64,000 bases of DNA, taken from Chara braunii (Eukaryota > Plantae > Charophyceae). A model generated the notes under the pieces. The model searched no databases and was not told the DNA's origin. It saw only the letters and a list, made by a program, of their open reading frames with translations. Numbering within the stretch: position 1 is the first letter of the stretch; the number at the start of each line of letters is the position of its first letter. The position numbers and the translations under genes are program-made. Location of the stretch: positions 4,431,832-4,495,831 of the forward strand of contig BFEA01000011.1 in NCBI GenBank assembly GCA_003427395.1, given 5' to 3'. Positions 14,403 to 36,735 of the stretch are shown here, piece after piece.

Positions 14403-17387
14403 CCTTTTTTTCTTTTTTTTTTTGGCTGCTCTGTCTATTGATGGGGAGTGACAACTGCTGGAAAATGGGTCCAGCATCCCTTGAATACATTCTCTCTTTT
14501 TTTAGCATGAACCATACGTGTTGAAAACTGGATCCACATCCCGTGGCAACCCTTCTCCCAACCCCCCTTCCTCACCCTTGACCTAACAGGGTATCGGAGG
14601 GAGTCACTAGGGGGCACCAGTGGGTCCTTCCTAGCCCGCCAACGTCTCCTGCCTCTGAACCATCCTCGAACTACCTATGCAAGGAATCTTTGTGTTGAGA
14701 TCCATGCTCAACCATGCTCATCCTCCTTTTTTTCTCCAAACTACTCGTGCCGAGAACTGGACTCAGTGTCTTTTGGATTACCTATGTCGAACCACTGTGC
14801 TGGAAATCGGGTACAGCATCCCATGGCTACGTTGGGGGGGGGGCGGGGGGGGGTCTCAGGCTGCCCCTTGCTCGGGTCCCATTAGAGCAAGCGGGTGTGG
14901 GGGAAAGGGGTCCGGGAACTCCACTGCGAGTCTCAATGGGATTCCGGGATCAACCACAGTCCAGTTCCGAAAGACTAGTCTGTAGTCCCTGTGCGCCTCC
15001 TCCTCTACCTCCCCCCGTTCCTCCTACAACCCCGAGTGTCGGGGAACATCGTCGGACCATGTCAAATCTGCCATCCACCCCTCTTGCTGCCTCCCAGCGA
15101 TTCCTTGCAGAAGGTTGATATGTTTCGTCGCGCGTGAACAAAATCCATCTTTTGTTTGGCCTCTTGCAAGTGATTCAGGATCTCAACTTGGACCAGTTGC
15201 TTGATCGATTCGGTTGCTTCGCCTTCCTCTATCTGTGCCCCTTCCAGCTCCAACACACACCTCCACCACCAGATCACCCAAACAATCGATAACCTGTCCA
15301 CCGGAAACAAGTTCTCTGTGAGGGGGTCATCCAGGCAGTGCGACCAGTATCCCGTTATCACCGCTCTGCAATCCCATGACCACTCCTGATCTGGTACAAT
15401 CTGCCGCCATATCCTGTCCCACCACCTCCACAACAATACCGATGAGGGGCACTGCATAAGAATGTGTCCAATTGTCTCAGTCCTTTCTTGCGGTAAATAC
15501 TTTTGCAGACACCTCCAACACCATGGTGTTGCCCGTCCTTGTTGCTCTAACCTCGTGTGGTTGATCAGCCAATCCTTAGCTAGGAGGCAGCGATGGGCAA
15601 TTTGCCATTGTAGAGCTGAGATCTTTATTGGCCTTAGCATCACCTCCCAGAACCATTTGATGGGGCGGAGGAGGAGCCAATCAATGTTCAGGTGGCACTG
15701 CCATCTATCCTCTATCCTGTCCCAGGGCCCCTTCTTGGGCCACAAAACATTCTGTATGCCTTTTTGACCTTCGTGTCAACTAGTGCCAGCAATCGCTGTG
15801 TGGCCCCGACCCTCCTCTCGCCCCTGGACCACCGCCACTCGACGAGGTCCAAGGCCAACTCTGTGATTGGTGTCATTGGTTGGAAGGTCCTCCAATCTTC
15901 TCTAATATTCAAGACTCAAATGCGGTAAATTGTGGACTTGTCTATCCCTACAAAGGGTTGTCTGCTCCCCATTAGGTGGTCCTCCCTACCTAGATTATAT
16001 CTTTTTACAAGGACCTCATTGCGTCCCTCAATATGCACCAATCGGTCCAATCTGACTTTATCCTTGTCCCATGGAATTCCAACCCAGTCCCCTTCTTTCA
16101 ACTTTGGGCCCTTCTTGAGTATGTCGTACCATTCGAGCGGGAAGTTCTCATCCATTTGCCCCAGTGCCTCTTCCGTGTGGGGGCAGTAGCACAACCATCG
16201 TTTCGTTCTTTCCGTACTCTTCCAATCCTGGGTTTTCCCATCGCACAAGTGTCCTACCCTTAGCACCCCATGCTTGACCCACCCCCTCTAAGGGGCATCC
16301 AAGTTGCACCTGATCCGGCCATGGGAGTCTGTGATCCATCTCTTACCAAACAAAGGTTGCCTGAACACCTCATCCCATCAATCCGATGATGGTCTATCAG
16401 GGATCAGGAGTCTCCTCCAGGTCTTTAGGAGGTGGACCCAAAAGGCATCTACCGCATCTCCGCCCCTGTATACTCGAGGTATCCTTCAGTACCTGTCCTC
16501 AAACCAAACCAAAGGATTTACCTCCGGGGGGGGCAGGGGGGCAAGGGCCACGATCTGTGCCAATGCTAGCGAGCGCCATGGGGAGTTTTGGTTAAAGATT
16601 ATTAGCAAGATACACCGTAGGGTTAGGGCTTGAAACTGTGGGCCAGGTCTATAATACCCAACCCTCCCTTAGCCTTGGGTTGAATTATCGATTCCCATAC
16701 CAACCGATTGATCACATAAGGGGATTCACTATCCCCTCTCCATAGAAAGATCGTTATTTGCCTCTTCAAGGCTTTAAGTCTCATCTCGCTTAACGACCAT
16801 AGCACTAACTTATACCATAAGAACGCTAAAACCACATTGTTAATAACCAGGGTTTTACCGACAATCGAGGTGTGCCGCCCGTTCCAAGCCGCCAACTTGG
16901 CTCTAGCCAGGTTCGCCACCACCGTCGTTGGTAGTTGGTTTACCCTTGGCTGATAGAGATGCTCCAAGGACTCTCAATGGAGCCTCCGGGGGTAACCATG
17001 TAATATGTGGTCTCTCCAAAGCTCTCCCACCCTGGTGGTGCAGCCACCAGCCCACCGTTTTTTGTCCCCAATTAATTGTCATATCCTATAGCCGATAAAA
17101 CCGTTCCATCAAGGCTTGCAATGCCTCCAGGTTCTGTGTGCATGCCTCCATTATGATCATTAGGTCAGCCGTGAAGAGGGAGCATACTGGGATCACCCCA
17201 TTGGGGATCCCTGCTATCCCAATCCTCCTAATGTCCTCGTGGCTTCGCAGATTAGCTGATAAGACCTCCATTATGATTAAGAAGAGGTGAGGAGCAATCG
17301 GGTCCAAATGCCTAATTGACCATTGTAGCGGGAACTGGGGGGGCACAATGTCGTTGACTTGAACACTTGTGGTCGCTCTGGCCAAGG
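14403..17387 (-). mobile_element. LINE-C, 3' piece (late RT, CCHC region, long 3'UTR, poly(A))
   Basis: TSVQVN..., LFTADL, GGLGIIDL, CWRC...HILMQC; T-tract at 14405-14422. Confidence 0.9.
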
Positions 17388-17419
17388 GGTGAAAACGATC
17401 ACGGCCGACTACAGTCATT

Positions 17420-17627
17420 GGATCGTCCCGACCGTCCGTATTCCCGGATCGGATGGCCAGCAGGCGCGCGCGGAGGGCCCACCCGGAAAACCACATATAT
17501 GAGGCAGGCCCACCACTCCCTATTGGAACATCCCGACCGTCAGTATCCCCGGATCGGACGGCCAGCAGGTGCCCGCGAAGGGTCCTCCCGAAAAACTATA
17601 TATACGAGGGAGGGCCACCAGTTCCCA
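17420..17627. repeat. ~105-bp tandem duplication
   Basis: TCCCGACCGTC...CGGATCGGA...GGCCAGCAGG...GGCCCACCA occurs twice. Confidence 0.85.
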
Positions 17628-17942
17628 TTTTCGTTTCAGTTTGGCAACCCAGCGGTAGCGCAGCGCAGCGGAGGCTTGTGCCACAGCACAGCGCATTGGA
17701 GGCTCGTGTACAACGCGGCAACGCAGCGCAGGGATTCGGTCCGTGCATAGCAGACCACCTGCTCGACGCGACGACGGACCACAGCGCTGTCGAGAGGCGT
17801 GTTCAGCGCTACGACGGAGCGAGCATACGGCCCAAGATCGAGACGCACAACCACAGCGGAGCACCCCGAGTTTGAAGGATCGGACAATGAGGAAACAACC
17901 ACGCAGCCCAGCTGCAACCACGTAACGCCATGTGGCACTTCC

Positions 17943-19127
17943 GGTCGTTGAGTCGAACACGATCGTGCCTGATCGTCGAGTCGAACACGATCGCGCCCGA
18001 TCGTCGAGTCCAACACGATCGTGTCCGATCGTCGTGTCGAACACGATCGTGCCCGATCGTCGAGTCGAACACGACAGTGCCCGACAATCGAGTCGAACAC
18101 GATCGTGCCCGATGTCTGATTGTCGAGTCGAACACGCTCGTCGAGTCGAACACAGTCGTCGAGTCGAACACGATCTTCGAGTCGAACACGATCGTCGAGT
18201 CAAACACGATCGTCGAGTCGAACACGATCGTGCCCGATCGTCGACTCGAACACGATCGTTGAGTTGAACACGATACTGCCCGATCGTCGAGTCGAACACG
18301 GTAGTCGAGTCGAACACGACACTGCCCGATCGTCAAGTCGAACACGACACTGCCCAATCGTCGAGTCGAACACGACAGTGACTGATCGTCAAGTCAAACA
18401 CTATCGAGGAGTCGAACACTATCGAATAGTTGAACACGATAGTCGAGTCGAACAACGATCGTCGAGTCGAACACGATCGTCGAGTCGGATACGATAGTCG
18501 ATTCGAACACGATCGTCGATTGCGTTCGTCGAGTCGAACACGATAGTCGTGTCGAACACGATAGGCGAGTCGAACACGTCGAGTCGGACACGATCGTNNN
18601 NNNNNNNNNNNNNNNNNNNNNNNNNNNNNNNNNNNNNNNNNNNNNNNNNNNNNNNNNNNNNNNNNNNNNNNNNNNNNNNNNNNNNNNNNNNNNNNNNNNN
18701 NNNNNNNNNNNNNNNNNNNNNNNNNNNNNNNNNNNNNNNNNNNNNNNNNNNNNNNNNNNNNNNNNNNNNNNNNNNNNNNNNNNNNNNNNNNNNNNNNTCC
18801 GACGTCGAGTAGAACACGATCGTCGAGTCGAACACGATAGTCGAGTCGAACACGATCGTCGATTGCGTTCGTCGAGTCGAACACGATAGTCGAGTTGAAC
18901 ACGATCGTCGAATCGAACACGATCGTCGAGTCGGACACGATCGTCGAGTCGAACACGATCATCGAGTCGAACACGATCGTCGAGTCGAACACGATCGTCA
19001 ATTGCGTTCGTCGAGTCGAACACGATCGTCGAGTCCGACACGATCGTCGAGTCGAACACGATCGTCGATTGCGTTTGTCGAATCTAACACGATAGGTGAG
19101 TGCCCTGTCGTCGAGTCGAACACGATC
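17943..19127. repeat. CpG-rich ~18-bp tandem array (GTCGAGTCGAACACGATC), containing an assembly gap
   Basis: Dozens of directly visible units; N-run at 18598-18797. Confidence 0.97.
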
Positions 19128-19445
19128 CTTCCCTGTCCTCTAGTGGAACAAGATTGTGCGCGGTGCAATGTCATCGAATCGTTCATGATTGTGTGCAGTG
19201 CTATGGGCCGCGCACGTCGTATCCTGAAAGATCGTGCATGGGTTGTGTGCGTGGAATTATGGGCGTGGATTGCGCACGTAGATTCTGTGCATTGTGCTGT
19301 CGTGCAGCCTGGTTTGTTTCCATTGTTAGGGGGAGCGGGGTGAATAGTTCTATGCTGCTGTTGGTTGTTCTATTGTTGTTGTTGACCGTTGCCCTTGTGT
19401 CGTGCAAGGCGTCTTCTCTTCACTGTTGCTATGGAGATCTCTAAT

Positions 19446-20262
19446 ATGACCCCAACACTTTGGCATGCACGCAAGGCACACCCTTTCCCGCCTTGTGCGC
19501 TGTACGACCGACAATGTCAGGGCAACGTAACCTATGAAGGCGCTTGTCCAGAAGACTTCGAATGCGACCTTTGGATGAGAATCCTCCCGTTTGGCGACAA
19601 ACAGTTGGACTCGTGGGAGGAGTGCGAGTGGGTGAACATGACGGAGAGATGCCCGTGGGCGTGCGATTATGAGTTCGCGAATATGTTCGAATTCGGCAAA
19701 CGCATTCCCGTGCCGTTCGATGTGTTGCGTTCCGTGCGCTTGCCGCTACTGTGTAAAAAGCTTAAAAATAAGCCGTGTTATGGGGGTTTTGGACTGCGAA
19801 TACGTGACAACCTCGCCCCGCTCCTGGTGCCGTGTTATGGATCAGGAGTTACTCGATTGTGCGCGACATTCTCAGTTCCTCGATCATTATCCGTTGCGAT
19901 CTCCCGGTCTGTCGCCAGGAGCAGTTTCGTATTGTTGTGTGAGATTGCGTCTGACACACTTTATCTTCTGTAGGGTCCTCTGTATTGCCGTTTTGAGCAG
20001 GGCAAGAAACTTGACCGATGCTGTCGTGTATGTGTCCAGGAACGAGTTGTCTATGTCTGGGAGGGATATGTGTTTAGTTCAAAGAAGGGTAGATGGGAGA
20101 CTGAATATCGTGGTGGGTGGCCAGGTGGAGGATGTTGTTGCATGGCGTGAGGTCGAGGCTAAAGTCGTTTCAATTCGGGATGCTATAGGTGCTTCTCTCG
20201 TCGGGAACTCCGGGTTCGTGCGAATGACATACATTTCGGTGTTTGCTGAGACGGCGCAATAG
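19446..20262 (+). CDS. Possible small spliced gene within the transposon
   Basis: Two overlapping protein-like ORFs (Cys/Trp-rich first part) with an acceptor-like TTCTGTAG at 19973. Confidence 0.3.
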
Positions 20263-20804
20263 CTGACCTTCGAATCGCCAATTAGCGTGTTGAATGGCCT
20301 CAACGGCGGGATTGTTCCCCGTAGTCGGTAGATAGCCTTCGTCATATTGAATGGCCAAAACGGCATACTGAATGGCCGCAATGGCCGCAACAGCGAGATT
20401 GTTCCCCGTAGTCGATAGATAGCCTCGTGGAATTCGCATTGCGATTGCTGTTCTAAATGTGTTATTTCGATAACAATACGAGGTATCTGCTAGTTGTTCT
20501 CATCATGTGTTCAGTGCCCAAAAGTACACACGTTTGACGTTGTTGTCCTCATATTGTTTTTCGATTCATTGAAACCCGGGAATGATGACTTGTGTTTTTG
20601 GTTTGGCTGTGGACACCGACACATCGTTGCCAGCCGAGTGTTTGATTGTTGTTCTCATGTTGTGTTTCCTTTCAGAAAAAAAACTCGTTGTTCTGATGTT
20701 TTGCGTGCACAAACATTGAGCAGTCAATGTTTCTCCGTGTTAACCAGTGCCTGTGATCTGTTGTCTTGTGTTCTCGTGATCAAGTGCCCCTTTAGGCACC
20801 GTCC

Positions 20805-21362
20805 GCCGACCATTGTGTCGAACACGACAAACGTCGCACAGCACACCCCAGTGTCGCTGTCGTGTTCGACACGATGGTAGCCGCCGACCATTGTGTCGAA
20901 CACGACAAATGTCGCACAACACACCCTAGTGTCGCTGTCGTGTTCGACACGATGGTCGCCAGACGGTGCCCGTAAGGGCATGTGGTCGACTGTCGAACGG
21001 CAGACGACAGTGTCGCTGTCGTGTCGAACACGACAGTCAGCTCCCCTTCAGGCACCGTTTGGCGACCATCGTGTCAAACACGACATGGACACTGTTATCT
21101 GCGACCAGGCGGTGCATGAAGGGCCGCTTGGTCGACTGTCACACGACAGACAACAGTGTAACTATCGTGTCCAACACGACGGTTGGTCAGCCTGCGCAGT
21201 GCTGAGCTCGACGTCGAGCAGGACGACGAGTTGGTCGACCGTCGGGTTCGACACGACAGTGACACAACGACACCTCAATGTCGCTCTCGTGTCGAATTCG
21301 ACGGTACTGGAGGACGTCGTGGCACGGCCGTCGAGTTCGACACAACAGTGAAAACGACGACG
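20805..21362. repeat. Dispersed copies of the GTGTCGAACACGAC motif in both orientations
   Basis: Visible motif copies, including a ~78-bp tandem duplication. Confidence 0.9.
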
Positions 21363-21503
21363 AGCTGGCGGGCTGTGGCCCGTTTCCGTTGCTCTGTGTT
21401 CCTGTCTATTCTTGTTCTCAAGTGTTGTGGTGTTTGCACGTTGGCAAAGCAATGACTGCTTTCTCGCTTGTGCATTTTCTTCAGTTGCGACTAGCTACTC
21501 GAC

Positions 21504-24500
21504 ATGGATCGCGAGGGGAAGCCAAGCAAACGACGTACTAGTACTGGTTCCGGGAGCATGGAGCAGTCTCCGAAAAAACCGAAGGGGACACCAACGGCTG
21601 GCGTGGGGGCTGGCGACACATCGGGGTCTAAGGGCCACCGAACCCCAGTGCTGCGGGGTGCACCTTCTACGGGCACTCCTTCCGCCCATGTTCGAGGTTC
21701 GGGACCGGATTCGGCTGTGTTGATGACTGGTGGGGCTGCGGGTCAAGAAGAGGAGGCTACTGGTCGGCAGGGGAAATCTACGATGGACGTTGTGTCTAGG
21801 CGTAAAAGGTCTGGTGAGACATCCGTTGCAGGTGTGGGAGACGAGCTTTCTGTCGTCGACCACAAAGACAGGTGCTGGATGTTGGAGTGGGTGGGTGGAA
21901 TCGGGGAACCCTCGGGTGGGCTGGTTTTGTACGTGGTGATCAAAGATAACATTGTTCCGATTGGCGGTGTGGTGAAGTGGAGTGGAGGAAATTCACAGTT
22001 CGCCATGTTGGAGTTGACGATGGTCCTTAACGCTAGAGGTGAGCGGATGGCGAATGTCAAACGCGTTGCTCTTCGTTGGGCCAAACACGCTGGGTACGGC
22101 AAGAAGCTTTATGACATTTTCAATCCGCCCGGGACGAAGAAATTGATGTTGCCGGACCTTCGAGCAGTTTTCACATTCTTCGACAAAAATGTGGTCGCAG
22201 GGCATGAGCCGGTGGTGCATGCTTTCGACCGCATATCTAAACCGAAAAGCGTGCTTTCGTCGTCTTTGGAGGAGGCTCCGTCGTCGAAACCAATCATTAT
22301 AGGTGCCCGCCCACCGCCATCGCTTCGGACTACGGTTGCTGCGGAGGCGGCTCCGTCGTCGAAACCAATCATTATAGGTGTCCGCCCAACGCCATCGCTT
22401 CGGACTACGGTTGCTGCAACACGAGTTCCAAAATCTGGGCAGATCGGGGAGAAAGGTCCGTGTCGNGGGCAAATCATGCCGTCAGCCCCTGTGAAGCGTA
22501 GACCAACATCAACCAAGGAACCCGTTTCCTTGGTCCGCCCGCCACGCTATGAGTTGGTCATTCCTGCTGGGTCGCATTATTTTGGAGATGACGACGAGGA
22601 GAACAGCAAGGAAGATTGGGAGCGCGATGAAGAACGCGAAGAATATGAGGAGGGTGGCGAAGAAGAGGAAGTAGAGAGTGAGCACACAATCAGCGAGAGG
22701 GGTGGGCCAGGCGAATTGGAGGGTCGTCTAGGGGTTGAGTATGAGGACGAAGGGCAAGAAGAGGAAACGACCAGCGAGGGAGGGTATGAGATGTGCATTG
22801 GGGTTCCAAACGAATGCAGCTGCTCGCTTCGGGTCATGGGCATTGGGAAGCGGATCCAGGGAGCGGGGAAATGCACCGCGAAGTTGGGGTTGAGCCGGTG
22901 CATGCCGATGCAGCCCGACTAGCTGAGAAGAAAAGGAAGAACAGGCAAGAGAGGAGAAGTGCTTTGGACAGTAAGAAAACCAAGCAGGAGGGGGGAGCCA
23001 AGCAAGAGGAGGGCAAACTCAAGTTGAAAATGCTGGTAGTTGAGGAGGCCGTCCAACATACGCGGGAGGTTGAGGAGGCCATGAAGAAAAAACGGCAGCC
23101 AAGAAAAAAAGCAGCGAAGGGAGGTGTGATGGAAAAAACTTCCGTTTTTCCACCGGACCAGCCACAATCGGATGAAGACGCTGTGGGCAAGACAGTCACC
23201 AGACCGTCCGGTTTGCAGATTCTGCTGCCTGGGAATTCTTCTGGTCATCTTAGCAAAGACTTCTTCCTTGAGTTCGACGAGAATGGTAAACAGAGGCCGG
23301 AAATGCAGTTCATTTCTGTCAAGTTGGACAAGATTCTAGATATCCCTGATGAGAAATTCAGATATAATCAACGCTTCCTCGATCAGGAGCTTATTGATGA
23401 CCTTTACAAAACAATGGTTGAGTCGGGTGAGGCAGCTATCAGAGAGAGAACGACCGGGGCAGCCGGGGTGAATGTATGTGCATTGTCCGAGAAGCCTGTC
23501 CTTTTGTTGATTGAGCTACATGATACAATGCATATTGACGCTTCCGGTACGAATGTGAGGGCGAGAAGAGTGACGCCCGGTGAATTCGATCTCCAATCCG
23601 TGCGCAAGTACTACTGGTACCCTCTCAGTGGTCAACACAATGTTGCGGCGGCGAGGAAATGTTCTCAAGAACGCCCTGACATCGCCCGTGAGCTCCGTTT
23701 GGATTGCTGGACTGCAAGGCCTGTTTACTATCCGGATAGGAGCATGGAGAATTACTGCACCTTGAACACTTTCCAAAATGCGAAGGACAAATGGAATACT
23801 CCTCCGCACCAGATTGCTATCATTAAGAACATACGAAAGTTGTGGCAAGCAGCCGGTCGTCCAGAAGCTATAGGCGGATCTGCTGCAGACGTCAAAAATA
23901 AGGATTACAGAGAGTTTGCGGCAATGACTCTGCGCGCGATCGGGAGTGATCATTTGGTTACTCTTTCACTTCAGGCTTGGAGCAAGGAGTGGTCCGACTT
24001 CCTCGGGCCTTATATGGTATTGGCAAGGGCGACGGGCGATGTGTTCGAGAAGGTGCAACAAGTGTATTCTGCTTGGGAGAATGGACAGTTGCCGAGGAGA
24101 GATGGTGTGAAGCCTGCCACCAAACAAGGTGAATCGGGGAAGCGTCGAGACCTGGTCCCGGATTTGAGTTGGAAAAAGGAGTCAGGGTTCCAGTGCACTG
24201 GATTCAGGGTACTAGATGACCTGGTTACCTCGTGGCTGTGCGCGATCCGGATGTCAGATCATGGAAGGCTATGTCTACGTTGGGGAGGCGTGAGAGGCTT
24301 CAGTTGTTGCGAGACATTCTCACGGGAAGTGTCATACTGGCTCCAAGGCTAAGTAAAGTTGCTCACACTGCCGGGAAACATTCGATGGAGACATACGTGG
24401 AAATGGTGAAGCAGGAAAGAGCAATGTTGAGAATGTTTTACTACTTCGTCTTCATTTCTGACCCTCACAAGAAGCCGTCAGAGTGGAAGGAACNATTCTN

Positions 24501-27500
24501 CGACAACCTTTCTNATTTGTTCNNTAGNTATTGTGATCAAGGATNGACATCGNAGAGGTGGATCGACCAGCGACGACATTTCAAAGAAACGAGTTGGGTG
24601 AGGTCATTTCCGGCTACACTTGGAGGCGGGGATGAAAAAGGAGAGGAGGGCTTCAAGAAAACAAAATCGCTTGCAAACAAATGCCCCGAAGAGTTCATTC
24701 AATTTGTCAACAAGTTGTTGCGTAGATCTGAAACTGGGGGTTCGCATAGCATTCGTATGTCGGGGCAAGCGAGATATATATATTTCCAGAAACAGAACGT
24801 GACATCTGTATTCGTGTCGTTCCAGTGGGAACCGAACGATGTTTCAGACGAGATGGATTGCAAGGAGATGTTTAGAGCCGTCACACACCTGACGTGCCAC
24901 ACAGCCGTTCTGGATTTGTGCCGCCCGACCCAGATGGGTGCGTGGACTGAACAAGTGTTTCACGGACTCAAGAAGTTCATGGATAAACTTGGCGGCGAGT
25001 ATTGGACATTGTTGTGCTTCGTTCCACGCCCTTGCGAGTTCACATTCTTGAGGCGAGTCGCGATGTGGGACATTCAATTGGATCTTCTCAAATGGACTCG
25101 TCTACAACAAACAAAGGGGAAAGTGTATAAGGTTGCAAACTTGCCTTTGGAGGACACAGACAGAATGGTCGTCATCATGTACTCCAACGACGGGGATTTT
25201 TATCGCAACACTATTCTCTTGTTTGAAGATATTCAAGCTGCAGGTTCATCATCTGCCGAGCGGGTGACTGACATATCGACACTTGTGCAGAGAGAGAGAA
25301 AGCCGAAGATGTTGACTGATGTCGTGGAGAAAAACTTTCTACCATCAAAGTGGAAAATGGCAGGTATGGATCCACCGGAGAAAGTGGTCTATGATGGTAT
25401 GGAAAGGGAGCCGAATGCGATGGTGGAGACATTGGAGCATTTTTGTCATGCGGATGAGGCCGTCGTTTTCCTCGGGAAAGGTCATGCGGGATTGGTTTGG
25501 GAGTTGTTAAAGAGTCACCGTCATTGCATTGTGCTAGAAGGGGAGGGTATGAAGTTCAAGTTCCTCACTCAGTTCATTGACAAGATGGTCAAAACTCGAG
25601 ATTACTACACCAACTTTACTAAGCCGCCTCCTCGATATGATGAAGGGCGTGATCTCGTCTACAAGGTTGGCCAAAACGTGGTCAATATTTGGGAGTTTCT
25701 CTTCGAAACAAAGTCGCAAGACAGAGGGGAACATACTTATGTCCTCAGAAGAATAAAAGTGGAGAAGCTCTTGAGGGGTTATCATAAAGCACCATCGAAG
25801 AGGGAGGTTTCATTTCTCGACCGCTTGGAGACAATGTACTTCGACCAACAAATCGGGGCATTTACAATCGCAGGTTATGCGACTTGTTTTGTGGATGGTG
25901 AGGACTTTGATGCCGATGACTCAGAAGAAGAGAGTATTGATGGCACTTTGCAAGCGGTTTTGGCAGCTGAGAGGCAAAGAGCTTGTAGCCCGGCTTCGCA
26001 TTCGCAGAGAATGGGTGTTCCAGGCACATCGTCCGGTTCTGGAGGAGCTTCGAGCATGGCGGTTTCAACGGATCAGTTAATGACTCATCCGCCGACTTCT
26101 TCTATTGTTACACCGACTCAGATGGCGGGCAATACGATGACGGTGGCATCAGGAGACATTCTGGATCCGAATGTTCTAGCAATGCTCTCCCCAGAGTTGG
26201 TGGAAACTCTGGCACCATTTGCACACAGCCCAAGTACTATTATGGAATTACTACGCTCTCGAACTCCACAACAACCGCCACCTGATGAGCCTTTGGAGTA
26301 CGAGATTGGAGACACAATCCCTGCAGACATTCGACTGCTTCCGGGGCCTATAGTGTGCCGAGACGATTATACGGTGACGGATGATGCCACGTGGGGTTAT
26401 CACATCATATGGCACCCCCAACACTTCCAACCTCCATTGGCGAGAGGGAGGTGGATTATGGCTATAAAAAAAGAAGGGGAGTGGCAGTTTTGCCTCCATA
26501 GACGTATGTCAGGATCGAACTTTCTGAAACATGTCAAAAATCAGATTGTCAAGCGACTCATGCGACTTAATCCGGAGGTTTCTCAATCAAGACTAATGTA
26601 AGAACAGAAAAAAATTTCCAAAAGTTCAAAACATCGCAGTGGCTTGAGTATCTGGAAGAGTTCTATGATAGACAAACCAGCCCGGCTTATGGATATTATT
26701 GGCATGTCAGAGAAGATCTTGGGGAGAGGAAAAAATCAAGCGGCGGTGGTGACCATGGCAAGGGATCCGGATCGAGCGGAGGTGCGCATGGCAAAGGATT
26801 GCGATCGGGGAGCGGTGCAAGTGACAAGGGTCCGGAACCAAATGACGGTGCAAGGGGCAAGGACGCAAGTCATGGGGAACGACAACAAACCGAAAAGTCT
26901 AAGGGGTGTCAAGCAACAGAAGGCAAGGGATCAGCACCAAGCGGCGGTGGGCATGGCAAACCTACAGGACCAAGCGGCGGTGGTTCAACTGTCGAAGGGT
27001 CTCAGGGGCCTCAAGAAACAGGGCGCAAGGGATCAGGATTGAGTGGTGGCTTAACTGTCGAAGGGTCCCACGGTCGAGTCGAACACGACAATGGCTTCGC
27101 ATTGGAGCGTTCCCAGCTTGACCAAGCGAAGAAACTCACGGTCTAGTCGAACCCGACAGTGGGATCGGAAACGATCGTCGGTGCGACTGGCAAGGCTTTG
27201 GGACCAGGGGGGGGCAGTACAACTATCGACGGTGCTTCACCTGTCAAAGAGTCACACGGTCGTGTCGGACACGACACTCGTCCAGCATTCGAGCGCTCGC
27301 GGCTTGACCAAGCGAAGAAACTCACTGTCGAGTCAAACCGACAGTGGGATCGGGATCAATCGTCGATACAAGTGGCAAGGCTTCGGAACCAATCGACGTT
27401 GTTTCACCTGTCGAAGGCTCACACGGTTGAGTCGAACACGGCAGGGGTCCACTATTGGAGCGCTCCCAGCTTGAGCGAGCGGAGAAACTCGTGGTTGAGT

Positions 27501-29430
27501 CAAAACCGACACAGCAATAGGGATTGATTGCCGGTGTGAGTGTCAAAACTTCGAACGAAAAGGAGATGTGAGTTGCGAGGGCGTGAGTACAGCTGACCAA
27601 GTTTGGGCGACTACGATACTAGTGGGCGACAATGTCGCTATGGAAGTGGATATTACTGGTACACTCACGGAATTGCAGATGCCGTCGTCAACGATGCCAG
27701 CCGAAGTAAGCGGCACTTTCCAGGATACTTTTGAGGGCGTAAAGGAGGAAGAAACTTTCCATGTACAGGGCATCGAAGAGGATGAAGGACATATAGTACT
27801 CAGTACACCGGAGGAAGCTGTACTTGTACAACCTCAACAAATGCTTGAACAACCTCAAACACCACAGTCTGCTAACCTCATGATAACTATCGAGGAATCT
27901 CCTATTGCGCCATTGCATATGGAAGGTGTGACAAAAGGTCGTGTTGAAGAAAAACTGAGAGTTAGTCATCGAGGTGAGCACTTTCTTATCTTAGGAGCAA
28001 TATCTAATACTATATGCGGATTAGTGGGTACATCACATGCACTCATCTCCCATTGTGTCGATCCCTCAGATGTATTGTTTATTTACCTAGCTTTGGAACT
28101 GTGCGTTTTCTGAAGAAAAATACTACAATTGTTTTGTATGAAGACTTACTGCAATTGCCATATATTTTGTATTGGTACTCATGAGTCAGTTTCAACAACG
28201 GAAAGTCGGACTTGTAACTCATTATGTTTTATTTTGTCAATCATGCATGGCGACGAAAAGAACTGTGGAAAACGACACATGTACACTCGCAAAGGAAGAG
28301 AGAGAAGAATATCATTCGTCGTGGTTTGCAAGCTTTGTCAACTTTGCCGTTATTGCCAAAAAATGAGAGAAGAAGTCGTACACCCATGACATTTCCATCT
28401 GTGAAGCCAACTGCCTTAAGGATGTTTAAAGCTGTTGAAATAAGCCTCACAGAAGGGAAGAAATTGCATCGCGCAGGTTGCAGTTTATCTGTTATGGATA
28501 GCAACACTGATGACGAAACAGATAGACAACCAACAATATGAACTCATATTTATGTAGTCTATCACTTGTTTTTGTGTGAAGTCTTAGTCGCTCTATTGTT
28601 GTTTATATATGTGTTTGTATGCAGTGCATGACCCTTCGTTCCAGATTCCTTTAGCAACAGTACGCCTTACTGTAGAAGAAAAGGAGTATCTTGAAATGAT
28701 TACCGGCAGCACTGAAGAGAATGAAGAATACGGCATTGTCGATTACAAGGGGAGATGGAAGGTGGAAAAGAAAGACGCCATGCTCGCCGCCAAAGATGGA
28801 GAATGGTTAAATGATGAAGTCGTCAATTTGTACCTGTTAGCCATTCAGATCACCAATGACTACATCAAGAAGGTGGATTCGACATGTGCAGAAGTGGCAA
28901 AAGATGAAAGTTCTTGTAGCATTCCATCTGTGCATATTCTAAATTCTTTTTTCTTTCCCGGATTGTCAAAAGCTCAGTCCGCTGAAATCGCATACTCCGA
29001 AGGGACGAGATGGGTGAAGGACATAAATCTTTTCAATTTTGATCTGGTAATTATCCCTCTCCATTTCGGAAATCATTGGGTTTTAGCTTATGTCAGTATA
29101 GATCGCTCTGAGTGTAAATTCCGCCTCGTAGACTCTCTCCATCGTGTTGACTACGGTCCAACCCTCGAACTTTTGGCAGGTTTTTTCAGAGCAGAGTTTC
29201 AGCGACAAAATCTTCGAGAAAAATATCATGTGGAGGAGCCTACATCCTACTTTGATACATCAGTAGATGGGATTCCTGCTCAAGAGGATTCTTCTAGTTG
29301 TGGTGTTTTTATGTTAGGTTTTGCATCTTTGCTTGCAAAATGTCACTTCCCTCCGTTCGGTTTCTCACAAGATAGTATTCCTGATATGAGACTTAGAATA
29401 ACATTTGACATTTTGTCCATGGTTAGATAG
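21504..29430 (+). pseudogene. Large multidomain cargo gene: ParB/DGQHR-like, degenerate DNA methyltransferase-like and Ulp1 protease; frameshifted, with predicted intron 27974-28624
   Basis: Consecutive overlapping same-strand ORFs (21504, 22793, 24232, ~26620-27973, 28609) joined by frameshifts or single stops. GT..AG intron with phase 1 at both ends. Confidence 0.7.
28625..29430 (+). CDS. Ulp1/SENP (peptidase C48) catalytic domain exon
   Basis: WLNDEVVNLY, LNSFFF, IPLHFGNHW (His), DSL (Asp) and QEDSSSCGVF (Gln/Cys); the triad is intact and the frame is open. Confidence 0.93.
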
Positions 29431-29837
29431 GAAAGTCGATGAGAAATTCAGTTTCTAGGTTTGGAAAAATGAGGTTGACATGTTTACTTAGTGTGAACAT
29501 TCTGGGTGAAAATGTGTATTGTAGGCAATTTTAAAAATATGTTGACAATGTATAATGACATTTCCTAGACTTCTCATCAATTGTTGATGAGGTTAGCGTG
29601 TTTTACTGTGTGACATGTTTACAGAGTGGATTGTCAATCCTTGAGTGACATTTTTGCAGCTTGTGTACGTGTGAATATTCGAGGTGAAAATTTTTGTTTA
29701 ATTTCCTTCAACAACTTTCATATATAACCATTGTTTTCTCGTTGTTTGCTTATTTTTTCCTCAGTTCTTAGTGTCATTTTACAATTAAAATAAAAAGTGA
29801 ACATGAAAACAATTTCACTTTTAACGAAAGCACCGTT

Positions 29838-31562
29838 GGGACCAATTAAAAGGTGTTGGGGGGAGGAGTTGGCCGCCCACAGGATGGTGTGGCCACACAC
29901 ATCCTTTAGAGCCCACGGTCCGGGCCTGGGTATTGCAGGAGTGGCAATCTGACTCCCTCCAAACTCAAGGTAAGTTGATGAGCAGAAAGGGAGATGGGTC
30001 TATATGTTGGGGATGTTGGAGTTGAAAGTGATGTTCATCCTATGCATTTATGACCCCAAAAATACGGTGAGTGAAAGGAGGTTGTTTTTCGACAGTTTGG
30101 GAACGATGGTTCCAGAGGGGATCCCGCTCGTAATTGCAGGGGATTTCAACGCAGCCCCGAACATATCGCTTGATCGTTGGAACCTGCAGGTTTCCCCTTC
30201 TCACACGATAGAAGAGGATAAGCAGATTCGAGGGAAGCTATGCGACTCCCTCTCAGTATTTGACACGTTGCCCTGTCTACACCCGAATGCCCGCACATTT
30301 TCCTGCGTACGTGACAACGACCCTGCGAGGCAGATAAAGTTTTGTATCGACCTCGTCATCATCTCAAAAACGACCTGGAAGGAGCCCTTCGAGTCTTCGA
30401 CTAGCGGTTATCCTCCCGCGGAGCCCCCATCTGGGACTAAACTACAAAACGTGTGGATTGGTCCTCACAACATGAAAACGACCAGATCAAGGGTCGGGCT
30501 AGTATAAACTTAGCACATCCCTTATACTGGACAAACACTTCCAATCCCTCATCAAGGACATATGGCGATTCTGGCAGCAGCAAAAACCATAATTCGACTC
30601 AGAACTAGCATGGCTAAATAACAAGTTGTACTACATCGCAAGGAAACGCAATGAATATTTGAAAGAACGAGCAGCACAGAGGAACAAACATAAGATAGAG
30701 ATCCACAAAAAGGTCCATGATCTGGAGCAACAGGCAGACTCACAAGCTCAAGAACGGGACATTGAACAGTTGAAAAAACAATTGTTGCAATTCTCGCAGC
30801 AAAGATGGCAAGGACTAATTAAATGCAGTAAATTAGTCCATGTTAACCAGGAAGCTACCATGGACACCAGATTTTTCAACATGGCCTCGGGCAGAACGAG
30901 GTGAACAGTTATCGAACCCTCTTTGATTTAGACAAGGGGGATGACAGTCTAGCCACCTCCACGTCACATTGTACCCACGTCACTAGGATATTTTTTCAAA
31001 AACCATACATGTCTCAGTATGGAAGAGGGATCTAAACGATTTTCTTAAGGCTATACAGAGAGTGTTGTCAACACAACAAATTGAAAGTGTATATGCTCTG
31101 CTGACAAAGCAAGAGATATGGATAGCGCTGCACCAAATGGACGAAGGGAAGACCCCAGGTATTGATGGGTTCCCCAAGGAGTTTTGGGAGTCCATGTTGC
31201 CGATCCTGAGCTCTGACTTGTGGTCATACTACCAAAAGGTATGGGAGGAGGGATGTATGGGGGAAGTGGTTGGACAACGGGTTTTGATGCTCCTGTATAA
31301 GAAAGGGGATAAGATAAACCTTAGGAACTACAAACCCATCACCCTTCTGACATTTGTCTGTAAAATGTTGGCATTGGCCTTGGCCAATTGTATGGTCGGG
31401 GTCTTGGAGGATATCTTTCACCCAACTCAAACTGACTTCATATGCAACCCAAACATCCAAGAAAACATTCTTCTTGTTAATGAGATAGTTAACTTGTCTC
31501 GACGTCATGACCAAAATGCGACAATCATTTTTATTGACTTCGAAAAGGCTTGCGACAGTGTG
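29838..31562 (+). mobile_element. LINE-C, middle piece (APE body to early RT), inverted relative to the other two pieces
   Basis: GVAI, AGDFN, KTPGIDGFP, NYKPITLL and IDFEKACDSV. It starts at the transposon TSD and ends just before the RT segment found at 17387. Confidence 0.88.
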
Positions 31563-31744
31563 TCATTGTTCGCGTTCTGGGAGAATCAGCGCAGCGGTCC
31601 GCCAACGTCGACACGACAACTGCCCCGCTCTCCAGGTTAGTGTCGCTTCGGCCAACACGGAAAGAGAAAAGCCTCTGTGGACGGCCGTGTCCAGTGCTGG
31701 TTTATCGGTGACGTCAACAAGTTTTCTCCAACACTTTCACCGCA

Positions 31745-32692
31745 GTCGTTGTCGTGTCAAACACGATGGTCGATACGGTCGTCGTCGTGTCGAACACGAT
31801 GGTCGATACGGTCGTCGTCGTGTTGAACACGATCGTTGTCGTGTCCGACACGCTGGTCGTCGTGTCAAACACGATGGTCGTCGTGTTGAACATGATCGTT
31901 GTCGTGTTNNNNNNNNNNNNNNNNNNNNNNNNNNNNNNNNNNNNNNNNNNNNNNNNNNNNNNNNNNNNNNNNNNNNNNNNNNNNNNNNNNNNNNNNNNNN
32001 NNNNNNNNNNNNNNNNNNNNNNNNNNNNNNNNNNNNNNNNNNNNNNNNNNNNNNNNNNNNNNNNNNNNNNNNNNNNNNNNNNNNNNNNNNNNNNNNNNNN
32101 NNNNNNNNNNNNNNNNNNNNNNNNNNNNNNNNNNNNNNNNNNNNNNNNNNNNNNNNNNNNNNNNNNNNNNNNNNNNNNNNNNNNNNNNGGTCGTCGTGTC
32201 AAACACGATGGTCGTCGTGTTGAACACGATCGTTGTCGTGTCCGACACGCTGGTCGTCGTGTCAAACACGATGGTCGTCGTGTCCGACACGGTCATCGTC
32301 GTGTCGAACATGATGGTCGTCGTGCCGAACACGATCCTTGTCGTGTCGAACACGCTGGTTGTCGTGTCGAACACGATCAGCGTCGGGTCGAACACGATCT
32401 CCATCGCGTCAAACATGACCGTCGTCGTGTCGAACGCTCTCGTCCTCGTGTCCGGCTCGTTGTCATGCACGGCCGTCGTCGTGACCGACGTCGTGTCGAA
32501 CACGGCCGTCGTATTGTCGAACACGACCGCCATCGTATCGAGCACGACCGTCTTCATGTCCGACACGATCGTCGACGATGGTCGTCGTGTCCTGCACGAT
32601 GGTCGTCGGGTCGGACACGGTGGCCGTCGTGCCGAGCACGGCGGTCGTCGTGTCCGCCACGGTCAAACGCGGTCTTGGTCGTGTCGAACACC
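31745..32692. repeat. CpG-rich ~21-bp tandem array (GTCGTCGTGTCGAACACGATG), containing an assembly gap
   Basis: Same core motif as the 18-kb array with a different period; N-run at 31909-32188. Confidence 0.97.
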
Positions 32693-33818: not shown

Positions 33819-36735
33819 ATGGCTTGTGGTGTGCATGCTATGCCACAGCAGACTTGCAGCACAACCTTGGAAAGCATGGACTGTGTGGCGTCTAATACAA
33901 TGCTCAATGAGGATTTTCCTCCACCGCACCTGCCATTTTGTTCACAAGATGTTCGAAGTGGTCACGAACATGTCGATAATGCTCCAGAATCTCCTGCTCG
34001 TAAGATGTCACGAAATATTGCGTGTGCGGACACTACATGTGAAAGTGTGTATCCCGTCCTTCGATGCCCGGTTCGAACCTGTGAGCAGAGAGTGCTGAAG
34101 GTTAGGAGGGTAAGACCTCCTCTACTGACAATGACGCATCCGATGTCGATCGTGTTGTATGGGTGCCGAGGAGTTCACTTCGATATTTCGAGTACACAGG
34201 TCTTCTGTTTGGTGAGAGTGATGAAGGTGGTTCAGATTCAAGTGCTTCGGTGTCGTCTAGTGCTGATAGTTCTCCAGATAAAACCGATCTTCCACAAACG
34301 TACGCTGACCGGAACAGTGACCACTGTTGTCGAAATGACGATGAGAATTGTGACGTGATCTCTGATTTCGATGACATTTTTCCAAAACGTCTGTCCTCAG
34401 AGAAGCGTCCTTATACTTTTCGTCTCAGAATGCCGCGGTCAAAAAAGATTCTGCAATCAGTTCATAGAAAACTCACAAAAAAAACACTGGCGAGTGTGTG
34501 TGGGCAGGTTTGCTGTAAGTGAGAGTGTTGCGCTCAGATGACCCTGGACGACATCAAAGCTGTCCGGAGCGCATACTACTCTAAGAACTAGCAGAGCAGG
34601 GATGCGTGGTGGGTTGAAACGTTGAAGAGGTTCACCTTCATAGAAGATGAAAAAGAGATTGTTCAACCTATTGTGGGGAGACGAAAGGTATGCATTAGTG
34701 CTTGGTGTTTCACACTGGGTGTATGTAGGAATACATTTCTAAAAAAAAGGATGACTTTGTCAAAAGGCTACAATATGTCGGAGCATGGCAGTACTGGACT
34801 CAGACGCACATCAGCAACATATGCGACGATGGACGGGAAACTAAGCTTCTTCGTGCGAGACAACGGAGATTCCATGCCCAATGACATGAAGATCAAAGAG
34901 GGGGAATCAAGAGTGGTGTTGAGATTGCCTGCTTGCTATAACAAGGTTGATATTTATAAGTTGCTACAGTCGCAATTCGACAACGTGGGTGCTCCTTGTG
35001 TTTCTCTCCAAGTTTTTTACAACATGTGGAGAACGCAGTTTTGGCATGTGAAATTCCAAGACATTGATCAAAACTTTGCGAAATGCGAGAAATGTGTTGA
35101 ATACAAAGAATCTATCAATTCCGTAAAGTTCGTGCTGTGCGTGAGTACTTTGTTTCGTTACGCGAGAAACACTTGGACTTGCAGCTCCAACATCGTGTTG
35201 CGTATGAGGTGTGGAAGGATGAGTCGAAGAGACCGGGTTCCAACAGTTTGTGCATCATCATTGACAGCATGAACCAAAGCAAAACCAACATTCCACACTT
35301 TGGCGAAGAGAACAAATCGAAGGCATTCGCAAATATTCCGATGTTGAAAACGAATCTAACAGCTATTATTGCACACGGTCTCTCACCATCGGTCCATGTT
35401 CACACATGGTACCCTTGCTATCCACATGATTCTAATGCTGTAGTGTCATCCATTATGAAAGTTCTCCGCGACATCCAGACGACGAATGACTTGCCTCCTA
35501 AACTGAGGATACAAGCTGACAACTGTTGGAGAGAAAACAAAAACAGATACGTTTTGGCACTCGCTACAACTTTGGTGAAATTTGGCTTCTTCAAAGAACT
35601 CGAATTCGGTTTTATGTTAGTGGGACACACACATACGGGCGTTGATGCCACTTTCAGTCATTTCTCTCGCAAACTGAAAATGCACGATGCATATACCATG
35701 CTCGACCTCTTCAAGCTCGTTGCCAGTTCTAAAAAAGAACGTTCATCGTGCACATTCATGGATGAAATTGCTGATTGGCGAGCTGCTGTTAAGCCCTTCC
35801 TGGTCAAGAGACTGACCGGTCATACTCGTCCACAAGCATTTAGGTTTTATATGCAGGATGACAATCCTGTGTTCCAGTGGAAAGAGTATTGCACTTCTCC
35901 TGAATGGTCTGCTCCAGTCTATTGCTTTAAACGAGATGAAAACAAAGCATTTGCTGGACCCGAATGACCATTCATGCCATCACCTGTTCCGCCGTCAGCT
36001 TCTCTGCCTACTAAAGATAGGAATTCGGATTTCAAATCGGGAATTGAAGGTGTGAAGACGTTTGTTGGGTGGTTGGAGAACAAGAGGCACGAGTGGTTGG
36101 GAATGAAAGATGAGGTTAGTTTCTCAAAGGAGAGTGTTCTTTCACACTGGAAAACTTTCCTCGAGACAGTCGAGGAGCATTACGGGTCTGGGTTTGCGAA
36201 AACTTCACTCAAGGCTGACTTCTGGCCCTCACAAGACAAAATTAAGAAGGATGATCCAAATGATATTGATATTGCCTTCCTCTTGAAGAGCAATGAGAAT
36301 AAGGAGCCGTTGTTCGTTGGACCGACCAACGAGCGTCCAAAGGCGGAACTCAACCCAGTTGTGGATGTCGAAAAAGGTCAATTTGTTCTCTTGCGTCCTT
36401 CCCAAGATGATATCGATGAGGGAGTTCCTGTATGAAAGGGTAGAGTCATTTCCGATGTAGACAACGATATGAAGTCGCTAACTTTCAATCATATTCTTAT
36501 TGAATATTGGGTGCCACAACCTATTGCTAAACGTCTTTCTGTGCAATATTCGAACGCATGGAAGAAGACATGAAAGAAAGACAACACAACATCACAGCAG
36601 TGGCAGCATGTAGACTGTGTTGTGTGGAGCTGGACATCCAAGAGATTGCATTTAGAAAATGAATTGCATATTCCAAAATCGGCCAGAGAGAAGGCCTTGG
36701 TATGCCTTTCATTTTCCGATAATGAAGATCAGTAG
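33819..36735 (+). pseudogene. Sola-like DDD transposase, disrupted
   Basis: CxxC (FAKCEKC) precedes the triad IIID...QADNCWRENKN...FMLVGHTHTGVDATFS. Several in-frame stops and a frameshift near 35120. The start position is uncertain. Confidence 0.82.

Follow-up and report, generated by a model that had tools for sequence, protein, structure and literature searches.

The window analysed here, a 64,000-nucleotide stretch of Chara braunii DNA, carries a gene whose protein includes what the predicted model identifies as a genuine, extremely diverged ParB N-terminal domain. A second domain downstream in the same protein looks, from its motifs, like a disabled pseudo-methylase. The gene itself probably belongs to a giant cut-and-paste transposon of Chara braunii, as one of its accessory (cargo) genes. 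The reading that we favour, by no wide measure of confidence, is that this diverged ParB domain and its pseudo-methylase are transposon cargo that would bind the palindromes of their own element.

ParB-type proteins are classic bacterial devices that mark and move their own DNA. Recent papers on algal genomes have reported such proteins from giant transposons of eukaryotes, with no test of their function. The Chara family offers a large natural series: about 100 copies have diverged, none has the canonical arginine, and the rest of the pocket is kept. It also adds a partner methylase that looks disabled, and different palindromes beside different subfamilies. Taken together, these three features make it possible to match protein to site in a direct and testable way.

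The gene and its family

The features of the window are collected in Table 1. Gene models P0004, P0012 and P0236, the last of them an example of an intact copy, span both junctions between the three pieces of the gene. The first break is a 1-bp loss at ~22788-22789, and the second combines a 1-bp loss at ~24142 with an in-frame TGA at 24217-24219; N bases at 24494-24555 interrupt the gene as well. In the searches described below, each piece was used separately. RNA over 21400-24490 amounts to 10 reads from three poly-A runs. Most of these reads run on into unlike sequence, and most are derived from paralogs. The window's copy of the ParB-methylase gene is broken and silent; it is dead.

Table 1. 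Features of the ParB-methylase gene and its surroundings in the window
Feature	Position	Strand	Remarks
Tandem array, 18/28-bp units with half-palindrome ...GTCGAACACGA...	17941..19127		Homologous to arrays in L003 and L006
78-bp repeats, inverted copies of the CGTGT-N3-ACACG palindrome	20803..21184		Just upstream of the gene
One decayed gene, three ORF pieces (21504-22922, 22793-24352, 24232-26601)	21504..26601	+	Gene models
ParB N-terminal-like (ParB/Srx fold) domain	23294..23797	+	Model residues ~19-186 of piece 23240-24130
Y-N-Q-R motif	23363..23374	+	Family consensus Y-N-[HQ]-R; counterpart of ParB Q/N-P-R box
SGQHN	23627-23641	+	Inside ORF 22793..24352, part of YWYPLSGQHNVAAARK
G-Q-H-N	23630..23641	+	Strand-helix junction; counterpart of ParB G-E-R-R and DndB (D)G-Q-H-R; final Arg replaced by Asn
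Conserved Asn N180	23777..23779	+	Helix 170-181; counterpart of Asn in ParB E-N-x-x-R box
Helical domain after ParB-like core	23798..24079	+	Model helices 191-280
Beta-class N6A/N4C DNA methyltransferase fold	24742..25629	+	Same protein, downstream of ParB-like domain; catalytic and SAM-loop motifs absent
Ulp1/SUMO-protease catalytic domain (Peptidase_C48)	28918..29412	+	Pfam E 2.4e-17; downstream of ParB gene
21-bp tandem array of CGTGT-N3-ACACG, split by N run	31745..32663		Matches L003 array 11413-12445, reversed
DUF7869 domain, probable transposase of same element	35329..35895	+	Pfam E 3.7e-56

The family comprises about 100 Chara braunii gene models, and 115 proteins entered the motif census. 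A profile search of 1.84 billion representatives returned 101 matches, of which 20 were looked up: 17 were from Chara and three were metagenome contigs. A word search with the two-domain alignment for relatives outside Chara gave Chara only, and neither relatives nor a donor lineage emerged when metagenome, viral and bacterial/archaeal contigs were scanned for patterns.

Fold of the ParB-like domain

An AlphaFold (AF2) model of 23240-24130 (m3732f63c1c74), built without templates, has a pLDDT of 85.2 and a pTM of 0.79. Its core runs strand, loop, helix, strand, strand, helix, strand, helix, and can be superimposed on solved ParB/Srx members. The original prediction had assigned the region to this superfamily. 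As to structure the assignment is borne out, with all seven matches at Z of at least 5 among 48,161 PDB representatives being ParB/Srx proteins: KorB (7.6), PadC (7.3), pNOB8 ParB (6.5), SerK (6.4), SbnI (5.7), Srx (5.6) and Atu1540 (5.5). A second comparison put M. xanthus ParB-CDP first (Z 8.9, 2.3 A over 95 residues, model range 23-185), followed by B. subtilis ParB-CDP (Z 8.6) and C. crescentus ParB-CTPgS (Z 8.4). In that comparison, 26 ParB/Srx entries reached a Z of at least 4.8, and the next value was 3.1. Foldseek likewise filled all of its top 26 places with ParB, Noc, Srx, PadC and KorB, at a best E-value of 0.075. By the comparison tool's own scale, Z values of 7-9 are 'middling'; the ParB assignment therefore depends not on any single score but on how uniform the hits are and on motifs that lie in register. 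Shape searches of the Atlas led to ParB_N, DndB and DUF6551 clusters, and language-model features of the core led to ParB_N clusters (score 0.90).

The helices that follow the core may be the DNA-binding part of the protein. The KorB co-complex chain 8qa9_B aligned over 139 residues, as far as model residue 265, and clusters that combine ParB_N with HTH_ParB aligned over 183 residues in the Atlas shape search.

As to profiles the assignment found no support, every HMM search having come back blank. Pfam gave no ParB, DndB or DUF3723 match for the three ORF pieces or for 10 close, 42 diverse and 32 full-length family members. Even at E<=10, ParB_N (PF02195) matched none of the 42 diverse members and PF12520 (DUF3723) matched no member. 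NCBIfam and PHROGs gave no ParB, DndB or DUF3723 match, the PADLOC HMMs matched none of the 42 members, and PDB sequences, searched by phmmer and by profile, were equally blank. When the 42-member alignment was compared by hhalign with single F-plasmid ParB-family and SopB sequences, the probability was 0.1. Domains of this kind can diverge beyond the reach of all HMM libraries, and their fold will still reveal them. A word search with F YubM returned near-identical proteins only, and a scan of viral contigs returned four loci.

Motifs and their conservation

The strings on which the original prediction was built all occur, in order, in ORF 22793..24352 (519 aa): ISVKLDKI (from 23312), YNQRFLDQELIDDLYKTM, PVLLL, YWYPLSGQHNVAAARK and WTARPVY. 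Their significance is best judged from an alignment of 42 relatives with identities down to ~20%. Y127 and Q132 are invariant in this alignment, and N43, R45, L90, P113, G131, H133, A137, N180 and W202 are at least 90% conserved. Within the first motif, N43 is kept in 39 and R45 in 38 of the 42; it precedes helix 49-72, a position that agrees with the ranges structurally aligned to solved ParB. The G-Q-H-N block is similarly stable (G in 41, Q in 42 and H in 38 of 42), and N180 is asparagine in 38 of 39 aligned sequences, five residues before the stretch aligned to M. xanthus ParB 37-132 ends. Because the same blocks are kept in relatives this distant, the sequences indicate that the motif pattern is not due to chance.

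Set against the phosphate motifs of ParB, in the register suggested by the aligned ranges, N-x-R is kept, G-E-R-R has become G-Q-H-N, and the third box retains its asparagine only. In the GxxR motif of the ParB/Srx superfamily, the glycine is conserved, and the arginine position is never arginine. In the census of 115 family proteins, the residue after G-Q-H was N in 49, T in 32, M in two, S in one, K in one and R in none; of the 96 motif-bearing members, 81 thus have N or T as the fourth residue. Since G-Q-H is never followed by R, the original prediction was correct in reading SGQHN for DGQHR with the key arginine replaced. On this census, the loss is a trait of the whole family rather than a fault of the window's copy.

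The methyltransferase-like domain

The model of the downstream region (m2fead636a7f8, pLDDT 78.9) matches CcrM at Z 16.8, M.BceJIV at 16.4, M.RsrI at 16.0 and M.PvuII at 15.6. The top match is a CcrM-DNA complex. Twenty methyltransferases score at least 8.7, and the next match falls to 5.9. The combination of a ParB fold with a CcrM-like methylase fold agrees with the bacterial or phage-type ancestry that had been proposed for the ParB-like domain. The DPPY and FxGxG motifs are absent, and the family consensus has D-L-C-x-P and F-L-G-K-x-H-A in their places. The domain was found in 69 of the 115 family proteins; it is co-conserved with the ParB-like domain, and the two are continuous in gene models P0004, P0012 and P0236.

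Element context and palindrome arrays

A transposon setting had also been predicted, and related loci make it probable. The gene is multi-copy, and the window is collinear with locus L006 over 12.5 kb and with locus L003, including the opposite-strand DUF7869 gene. Window positions 33619-35590 correspond to L003 8418-10372 (90.5%), reversed, and in L003 the DUF7869 gene adjoins an array and lies on the strand opposite to the ParB gene. Linkage of an Ulp1 gene to the ParB gene recurs in a metagenome contig (L002) and in three of 32 family gene models.

Exact copies of CGTGT-N3-ACACG number 21 in the window against 0.04 expected. All lie within 18033-32504, in clusters on either side of the ParB gene. 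L003 has 13 such palindromes, of which 12 are clustered at 11559-12162, with the DUF7869 gene on one side and the ParB gene on the other. The 18/28-bp array of the window is homologous to arrays in both L003 and L006. At L004, a locus of a diverged subfamily, eight copies of a different palindrome, ATTATAG-NN-CTATAAT, lie upstream of the gene; L005, one of four loci examined, has no obvious array. The protein that binds the arrays could also be the transposase rather than the ParB-like one, as is the case for subterminal repeats in CACTA-type elements.

Function of the protein

Under the favoured reading, the ParB-like module and the helical domain would form a dimeric, sequence-specific DNA binder. 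Its targets would be the palindrome arrays of its own element, much as parS and OB sites are the targets of ParB and KorB. The bound protein would then tether the pseudo-methylase, and possibly also the Ulp1 protease, to the element's copies. Such tethering might regulate the divergent promoters of transposase and cargo, or counter silencing by the host.

Canonical ParB needs the GxxR arginine for CTP binding. As the pocket of the Chara domain keeps N-x-R, G-Q-H and the later asparagine without the canonical arginine, any nucleotide switch is presumably altered, for example by histidine replacing arginine, or by a different or weaker ligand. Binding of CTP itself is doubtful.

A different view of the same pocket is that the fold is real and the pocket dead. 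The domain would then be a scaffold for dimerisation or protein interaction, and DNA recognition would fall to the methylase-shaped domain or to some other protein. The absence of the GxxR arginine from every member points in this direction. A fully non-enzymatic protein is plausible because the methylase domain has lost its catalytic motifs too, and beta-class methylase folds can bind specific DNA unaided, as in the CcrM-DNA complex that is the top match here. However, around the site that corresponds to the ParB pocket, N43, R45, G131, Q132, H133 and N180 are at least 90% kept at ~20% identity, which exceeds what a scaffold needs, and the best structural matches are nucleotide-bound forms of ParB. 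A dead pocket is a serious but rather unlikely explanation.

At the other extreme, the family could represent a working eukaryotic system of the ParB-parS type, with a nucleotide-gated, arginine-less clamp on subfamily palindromes that shields the element. The G-Q-H-N/T pocket would still switch, with histidine standing in for arginine and a nucleotide perhaps other than CTP. The clamp would load on subfamily-specific arrays and spread over the transposon in chromatin, while silencing of the element would be held off by the pseudo-methylase together with the linked SUMO protease. DUF3723 of the fungal Starships could be a module of the same type. This fuller system, DUF3723 included, is improbable as a whole.

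The original prediction went further than the superfamily and held the domain to be closest to DGQHR/DndB proteins. If so, it would be a regulator of the DGQHR/DUF262 branch; instead of working as a ParB clamp, it would sense DNA modification or be an ATP-modulated repressor. The Q-H dipeptide agrees with DGQHR, the Atlas shape search has a DndB cluster model at TM 0.45 over 196 aligned residues, and SspE reaches Z 3.9. But that cluster is just one of several similar shape matches, nucleotide-bound ParB, Noc and KorB rank first (Z 8.9-7.5), and solved canonical ParB outscores SspE, the sole structure of the DGQHR branch (DUF262-type) seen. Pfam DndB and the PADLOC HMMs match none of the 42 members, and DGQHR has lost both its Asp and its Arg here. 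Moreover, ParB_N joined to a beta-class methylase is a known architecture, with PMC12477816 describing a case. The closer affinity to DndB is thus not established, and a regulator of this branch is very unlikely.

Less likely still is a ParB-like nuclease that nicks or cuts DNA during transposition or against competing DNA. Some proteins of the ParB/Srx fold are annotated as nucleases, and Atu1540, whose function is unknown, is among the matches (Z 5.5). Against this, the element has a candidate transposase of its own, the nearest structures are clamps and repressors, and there is no conserved nuclease-type cluster of acidic or histidine residues beyond G-Q-H. That the domain is no ParB at all, owing its likeness to a common alpha/beta arrangement with chance motifs or to an artefact of the predicted model, is hardly credible: blank sequence and profile searches, Z values all below 9 and the weak Foldseek E-value speak for it, but the Z>=5 matches come from one small superfamily, Z drops sharply after the 26 ParB/Srx entries, three conserved motifs lie in the expected register, the partner domain reproduces a known ParB-methylase architecture, and the model was made without templates.

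Comparison with known systems

The closest published counterpart is in Ectocarpus. The 21.5 kb transposon Sola1-1_Ec32 encodes an accessory protein that joins a ParB-like domain to an N4C/N6A methyltransferase, on the strand opposite to the transposase (Dinatale et al. 2025, PMC12477816). Proteins of this type have been proposed to bind and modify their own element (PMC12477816), and the same article cites Iyer, Abhiman & Aravind 2011 for green algae. In both Chara and Ectocarpus, a ParB-like domain precedes an amino-methyltransferase domain within one protein of ~1,100-1,700 aa. The Ectocarpus gene is cargo of a giant DNA transposon on the strand opposite to the transposase, and so, probably, is the Chara gene, which in L003 lies opposite to the putative transposase gene. 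In Chara, however, neither domain is recognised by Pfam. The Chara gene further differs in its lost methylase motifs, its lost ParB arginine and its linked Ulp1 protease gene.

A second counterpart comes from the giant Plavaka transposons of the red alga Bostrychia moritziana, where PAG3 combines ParB with a 2OG-dependent oxygenase (Petroll et al. 2025, bioRxiv 10.1101/2025.02.11.637652). PAG3 adjoins tandem arrays of inverted repeats that have been proposed as its binding sites (10.1101/2025.02.11.637652). The Chara protein shares with PAG3 an N-terminal ParB-homologous domain, the status of an accessory protein, and inverted-repeat arrays beside the gene. The partner domain is an oxygenase in one and a methylase fold in the other, the transposon superfamily (EnSpm/Plavaka) differs from that of Chara, and the text on PAG3 makes no mention of Ulp1. 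Since ParB-methylase cargo genes of the same kind have been reported before in other algae, the Chara family is not a new class.

Among bacterial systems, the closest structures are those of the CTP-dependent clamps ParB, Noc and KorB (Z 8.9-7.5 over ~95 residues at 2.3-2.8 A). They share with the Chara protein the motif order Q/N-x-R, G-x-x-x, Asn and a helical domain after the core. They also share clustered palindromic sites near the gene, which in L003 are placed between divergent genes as in KorB. In contrast to these proteins, the Chara domain has G-Q-H-N/T for G-E-R-R and two insertions in the core, together ~45 residues long. It has no visible ParA partner, and it is eukaryotic, nuclear and fused to a pseudo-methylase. 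DndB and DGQHR proteins (PF14072, TIGR03187) share the superfamily and a Q-H dipeptide at the same junction. They differ in the Asp and Arg of their motif and in the dnd/ssp gene context that is missing in Chara, and their HMMs do not match the Chara family. The Q-H of Chara could equally derive from G-E-R-R.

The fungal DUF3723 (PF12520) is a conserved cargo gene of Starships, with unknown function (Gluck-Thaler et al. 2022, PMC9156397). It was the top language-model feature match (score 0.97) and supplied 13 of the 30 matches. The link to the Chara family is a lead only; if it is true, it would give the first functional handle on a conserved Starship gene. The likeness lies in what both are, namely conserved accessory genes of giant, cargo-carrying transposons.

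Sequence searches and the ParB-like fold

All of the motif strings behind the original prediction of a ParB/Srx-superfamily domain lie, in the order given there, within one plus-strand open reading frame of 519 aa, the second of three successive pieces (Table). None of the pieces has a match in Pfam, NCBIfam or a PDB sequence search. The ParB idea was unsupported by Pfam searches with 10 close, 42 diverse (E<=10) and 32 full-length members, by PADLOC, and by the family profile against PDB sequences. A PHROGs search was negative, with a single ParB-like match at E 0.19 in one of 42 members, as was hhalign against single F-plasmid ParB-family proteins. Taken by themselves, these results would suit a domain that is no ParB at all.

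Structure points the other way. The core was modelled with AlphaFold2 from an alignment of 42 diverse family members (A3), without templates (pLDDT 85.2, pTM 0.79). Foldseek gave no match to this model at E<=1e-3, and its best 26 rows were all ParB, Noc, sulfiredoxin, PadC or KorB. A second, Foldseek-independent aligner was run on all 48,161 PDB cluster representatives. Only seven reached Z>=5, and all seven are ParB/Srx-fold proteins: KorB (7.6), PadC (7.3), pNOB8 ParB-N (6.5), serine kinase SerK (6.4), SbnI (5.7), plant sulfiredoxin (5.6) and Atu1540 (5.5). When Foldseek's list was re-aligned separately, Myxococcus xanthus ParB-CDP ranked first (Z 8.9, rmsd 2.3 Å, 95 residues, model 23-185), followed by Bacillus subtilis ParB-CDP (8.6), Caulobacter crescentus ParB-CTPgS (8.4), Noc (8.4), KorB (7.6) and PadC (7.5); 26 ParB/Srx entries had Z>=4.8, and the next match 3.1. 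An ESM Atlas shape search with the core model retrieved clusters of ParB_N(+HTH_ParB), DndB, Noc and DUF6551, and language-model features of the core alone retrieved ParB_N clusters at 0.90. Although no single score is decisive, chance resemblance is very unlikely, because the matches are uniform, cover the full 95-residue domain and agree in motif register. The predicted fold is upheld.

For residues 150-470 of window 22793-24349, 13 of 30 language-model neighbours were DUF3723 clusters from fungi (score 0.97). In Starships, DUF3723 is a conserved cargo gene with no known function. Pfam found no PF12520 (DUF3723) match in the family, and a literature search found no link of DUF3723 to ParB.

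Conserved motifs and the nucleotide pocket

The conserved blocks in A3 are h-x-V-D-x-x-x-I-L-x-I-P; Y-N-[HQ]-R-x-L-D, ahead of a helix; P-x-L-x-L-A-P; R-V-x-P; [WY]-Y-x-V-x-G-Q-H-[NT]-x-x-A-A; W-x-A-R-x-V-Y-F; and S-x-x-D-N-x-[KR]. Y127 and Q132 are invariant, and N43, R45, G131, H133, A137, N180 and W202 are kept in at least 90% of members (numbering of the modelled piece, window 23240-24130). In a register to M. xanthus ParB taken from aligned ranges and secondary structure rather than residue-level superposition, N43 and R45 would correspond to Q52 and R54, G131-Q132-H133-N134 to G92-E93-R94-R95, and N180 to N127. The extra length of the core consists of two insertions, at about residues 73-87 and 94-117.

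In ParB CTPases, the second arginine of G-E-R-R is reportedly required for CTP binding (Soh 2019; Osorio-Valeriano 2019 and 2021; Jalal 2020). That position is N or T family-wide, while the remaining pocket positions are retained. The residue after G-Q-H is N in 49 proteins, T in 32, M in two, S in one and K in one, and never R, so that the missing arginine first noticed in the window holds for the whole family. A dead scaffold would suit this loss; the deep conservation of the other pocket residues speaks for a domain under constraint, in which any nucleotide switch would be altered. The claim that the domain is closest to DGQHR proteins is unproven: a DndB-type regulator would fit the DndB clusters in the shape search, which also returned ParB_N and Noc. 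A nuclease, the remaining alternative, fits poorly with the closest structures, which are clamps and repressors.

Family range and state of the window copy

A word search found 20 hypothetical proteins (51-92% identity), all from Chara braunii. A close-paralog profile gave 101 matches at E<=1e-3 among 1.84 billion representatives; of 20 looked up, 17 were Chara braunii gene models and three came from JGI metagenome contigs. A word search with the two-domain alignment found nothing outside Chara, and no relative turned up when metagenome, viral and bacterial/archaeal contigs were scanned by pattern. Pairwise identity falls to about 20%. From these matches and scans, the family is large and old within Chara and, at HMM level, so far unseen elsewhere.

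The window copy carries two 1-bp losses, an in-frame stop and a run of N bases (Table). Ten RNA reads from three poly-A runs of Chara braunii fall on 21400-24490; most extend into unlike sequence, their loose ends fitting a P0007-like paralog. Reads at 23771-23802 agree with the copy over its 30 best-conserved bases alone and then continue as P0007-like sequence; therefore, diverged family copies are transcribed at a low level and the window copy is not. It is dead and silent. In its first piece, 75 bp are also duplicated in tandem and in exact register (96% identity), doubling a 25-residue Pro/Ser-rich segment that is single in some paralogs (family alignment A1).

Features of the element in the window and at locus L003, a further copy
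Feature	Position	Strand	Remark
Tandem arrays with most CGTGT-N3-ACACG copies	17941-19127, 20803-21184, 31745-32663
First ORF piece	21504-22922
75-bp duplication	22268-22417
1-bp losses	~22788-22789, ~24142
Second ORF piece	22793-24352	+	519 aa
G-Q-H-N	23630-23641	+	read from ORF 22793-24352
In-frame TGA	24217-24219		Gly in intact models
Third ORF piece	24232-26601
N bases	24494-24555
Methyltransferase-like piece	24559-25920		454 residues
Imperfect ~170-185 bp repeats	26743-27559
Peptidase_C48 (Ulp1) ORF	28609-29430		E 2.4e-17; downstream of methylase-like piece
LINE-like ORFs	30004-31640
DUF7869 ORF	34622-36435		E 3.7e-56; adjoins palindrome arrays
DUF7869 ORF	L003 7294-8940		E 3.2e-22; adjoins palindrome arrays

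A methyltransferase-like domain and Ulp1

The downstream piece, searched as a separate reference, occurs in 69 of 115 family proteins. Its model (pLDDT 78.9) has a second fold, that of a beta-class amino-methyltransferase: CcrM scores Z 16.8 over 217 residues, ahead of M.BceJIV (16.4), Mod Mbo45V (16.0), M.RsrI (16.0), M.PvuII (15.6) and rotifer N4CMT (14.9). Twenty entries, all methyltransferases, have Z>=8.7, followed by a match at 5.9. The family consensus has D-L-C-x-P and F-L-G-K-x-H-A at the expected DPPY and FxGxG sites; with both motifs lost, the domain looks catalytically dead. Linkage of the methylase-like gene to Ulp1 recurs on metagenome contig L002. Imperfect repeats between this domain and the Ulp1 exon region hold one further CGTGT-N3-ACACG site, at 27261.

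Palindromes and element layout

The CGTGT-N3-ACACG palindrome occurs 21 times in the window (0.04 expected), always within 18033-32504, and 12 of the 13 sites in L003 are grouped at 11559-12162. At L004, the locus of the diverged P0082 subfamily, ATTATAG-NN-CTATAAT occurs eight times (0.00 expected) upstream of the gene; these copies sit inside ~100-bp repeats (2947-4353), 6-7 kb from it. Locus L005 showed no palindrome cluster. These clusters hint that protein and palindrome co-vary between subfamilies.

By BLASTN, the window is collinear with locus L006 over 17374-29838 (82-92% identity). Against L003, 17529-29838 aligns forward and 31550-35590 (array and DUF7869 gene) in reverse; L003 28190-29247 also aligns to window 17137-16084, again inverted. 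The DUF7869 gene (minus), arrays and ParB-methylase-Ulp1 genes (plus) of L003 are adjacent, with the arrays lying between the divergent genes. The opposite block orientations thus fit an inversion of the window copy between about 17.4 and 31.5 kb (~14 kb), or a misassembly, considered because of an N run (~31.9-32.2 kb) in the right-hand array.

Homology to L006 and L003 ends at 29838, in the stretch that separates Ulp1 from the right-hand array. The LINE-like ORFs of this stretch resemble an endonuclease and a reverse transcriptase and probably represent a LINE fragment, either an insertion into the element or a neighbour at its border. The L003 DUF7869 sequence is cut off by reverse-transcriptase sequence inside the same ORF.

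The DUF7869 protein is probably the element's transposase. The layout supports the transposon setting first proposed. The arrays might serve the transposase instead of the ParB-like protein.

Proposed role and comparison with known elements

We favour a ParB-like protein acting on its own element. As a dimer, the ParB-like module with its helical domain would bind the palindromes of the element and tether the pseudo-methylase, perhaps Ulp1 too, to copies of it, so that the element could regulate itself or escape silencing.

A literature search found no link of Chara to ParB as a transposon accessory protein. According to Dinatale et al. (2025, PMC12477816), the giant transposon Sola1-1 of Ectocarpus encodes a 1,104-aa accessory protein combining ParB-like and N4C/N6A methylase domains, and its transposase is on the other strand. 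PAG3, a ParB and 2OG oxygenase fusion, adjoins tandem inverted-repeat arrays and is proposed to bind the arrays of its own element (Petroll et al., 10.1101/2025.02.11.637652). The Chara gene is a new, more degenerate variant of this published type of algal transposon cargo gene.
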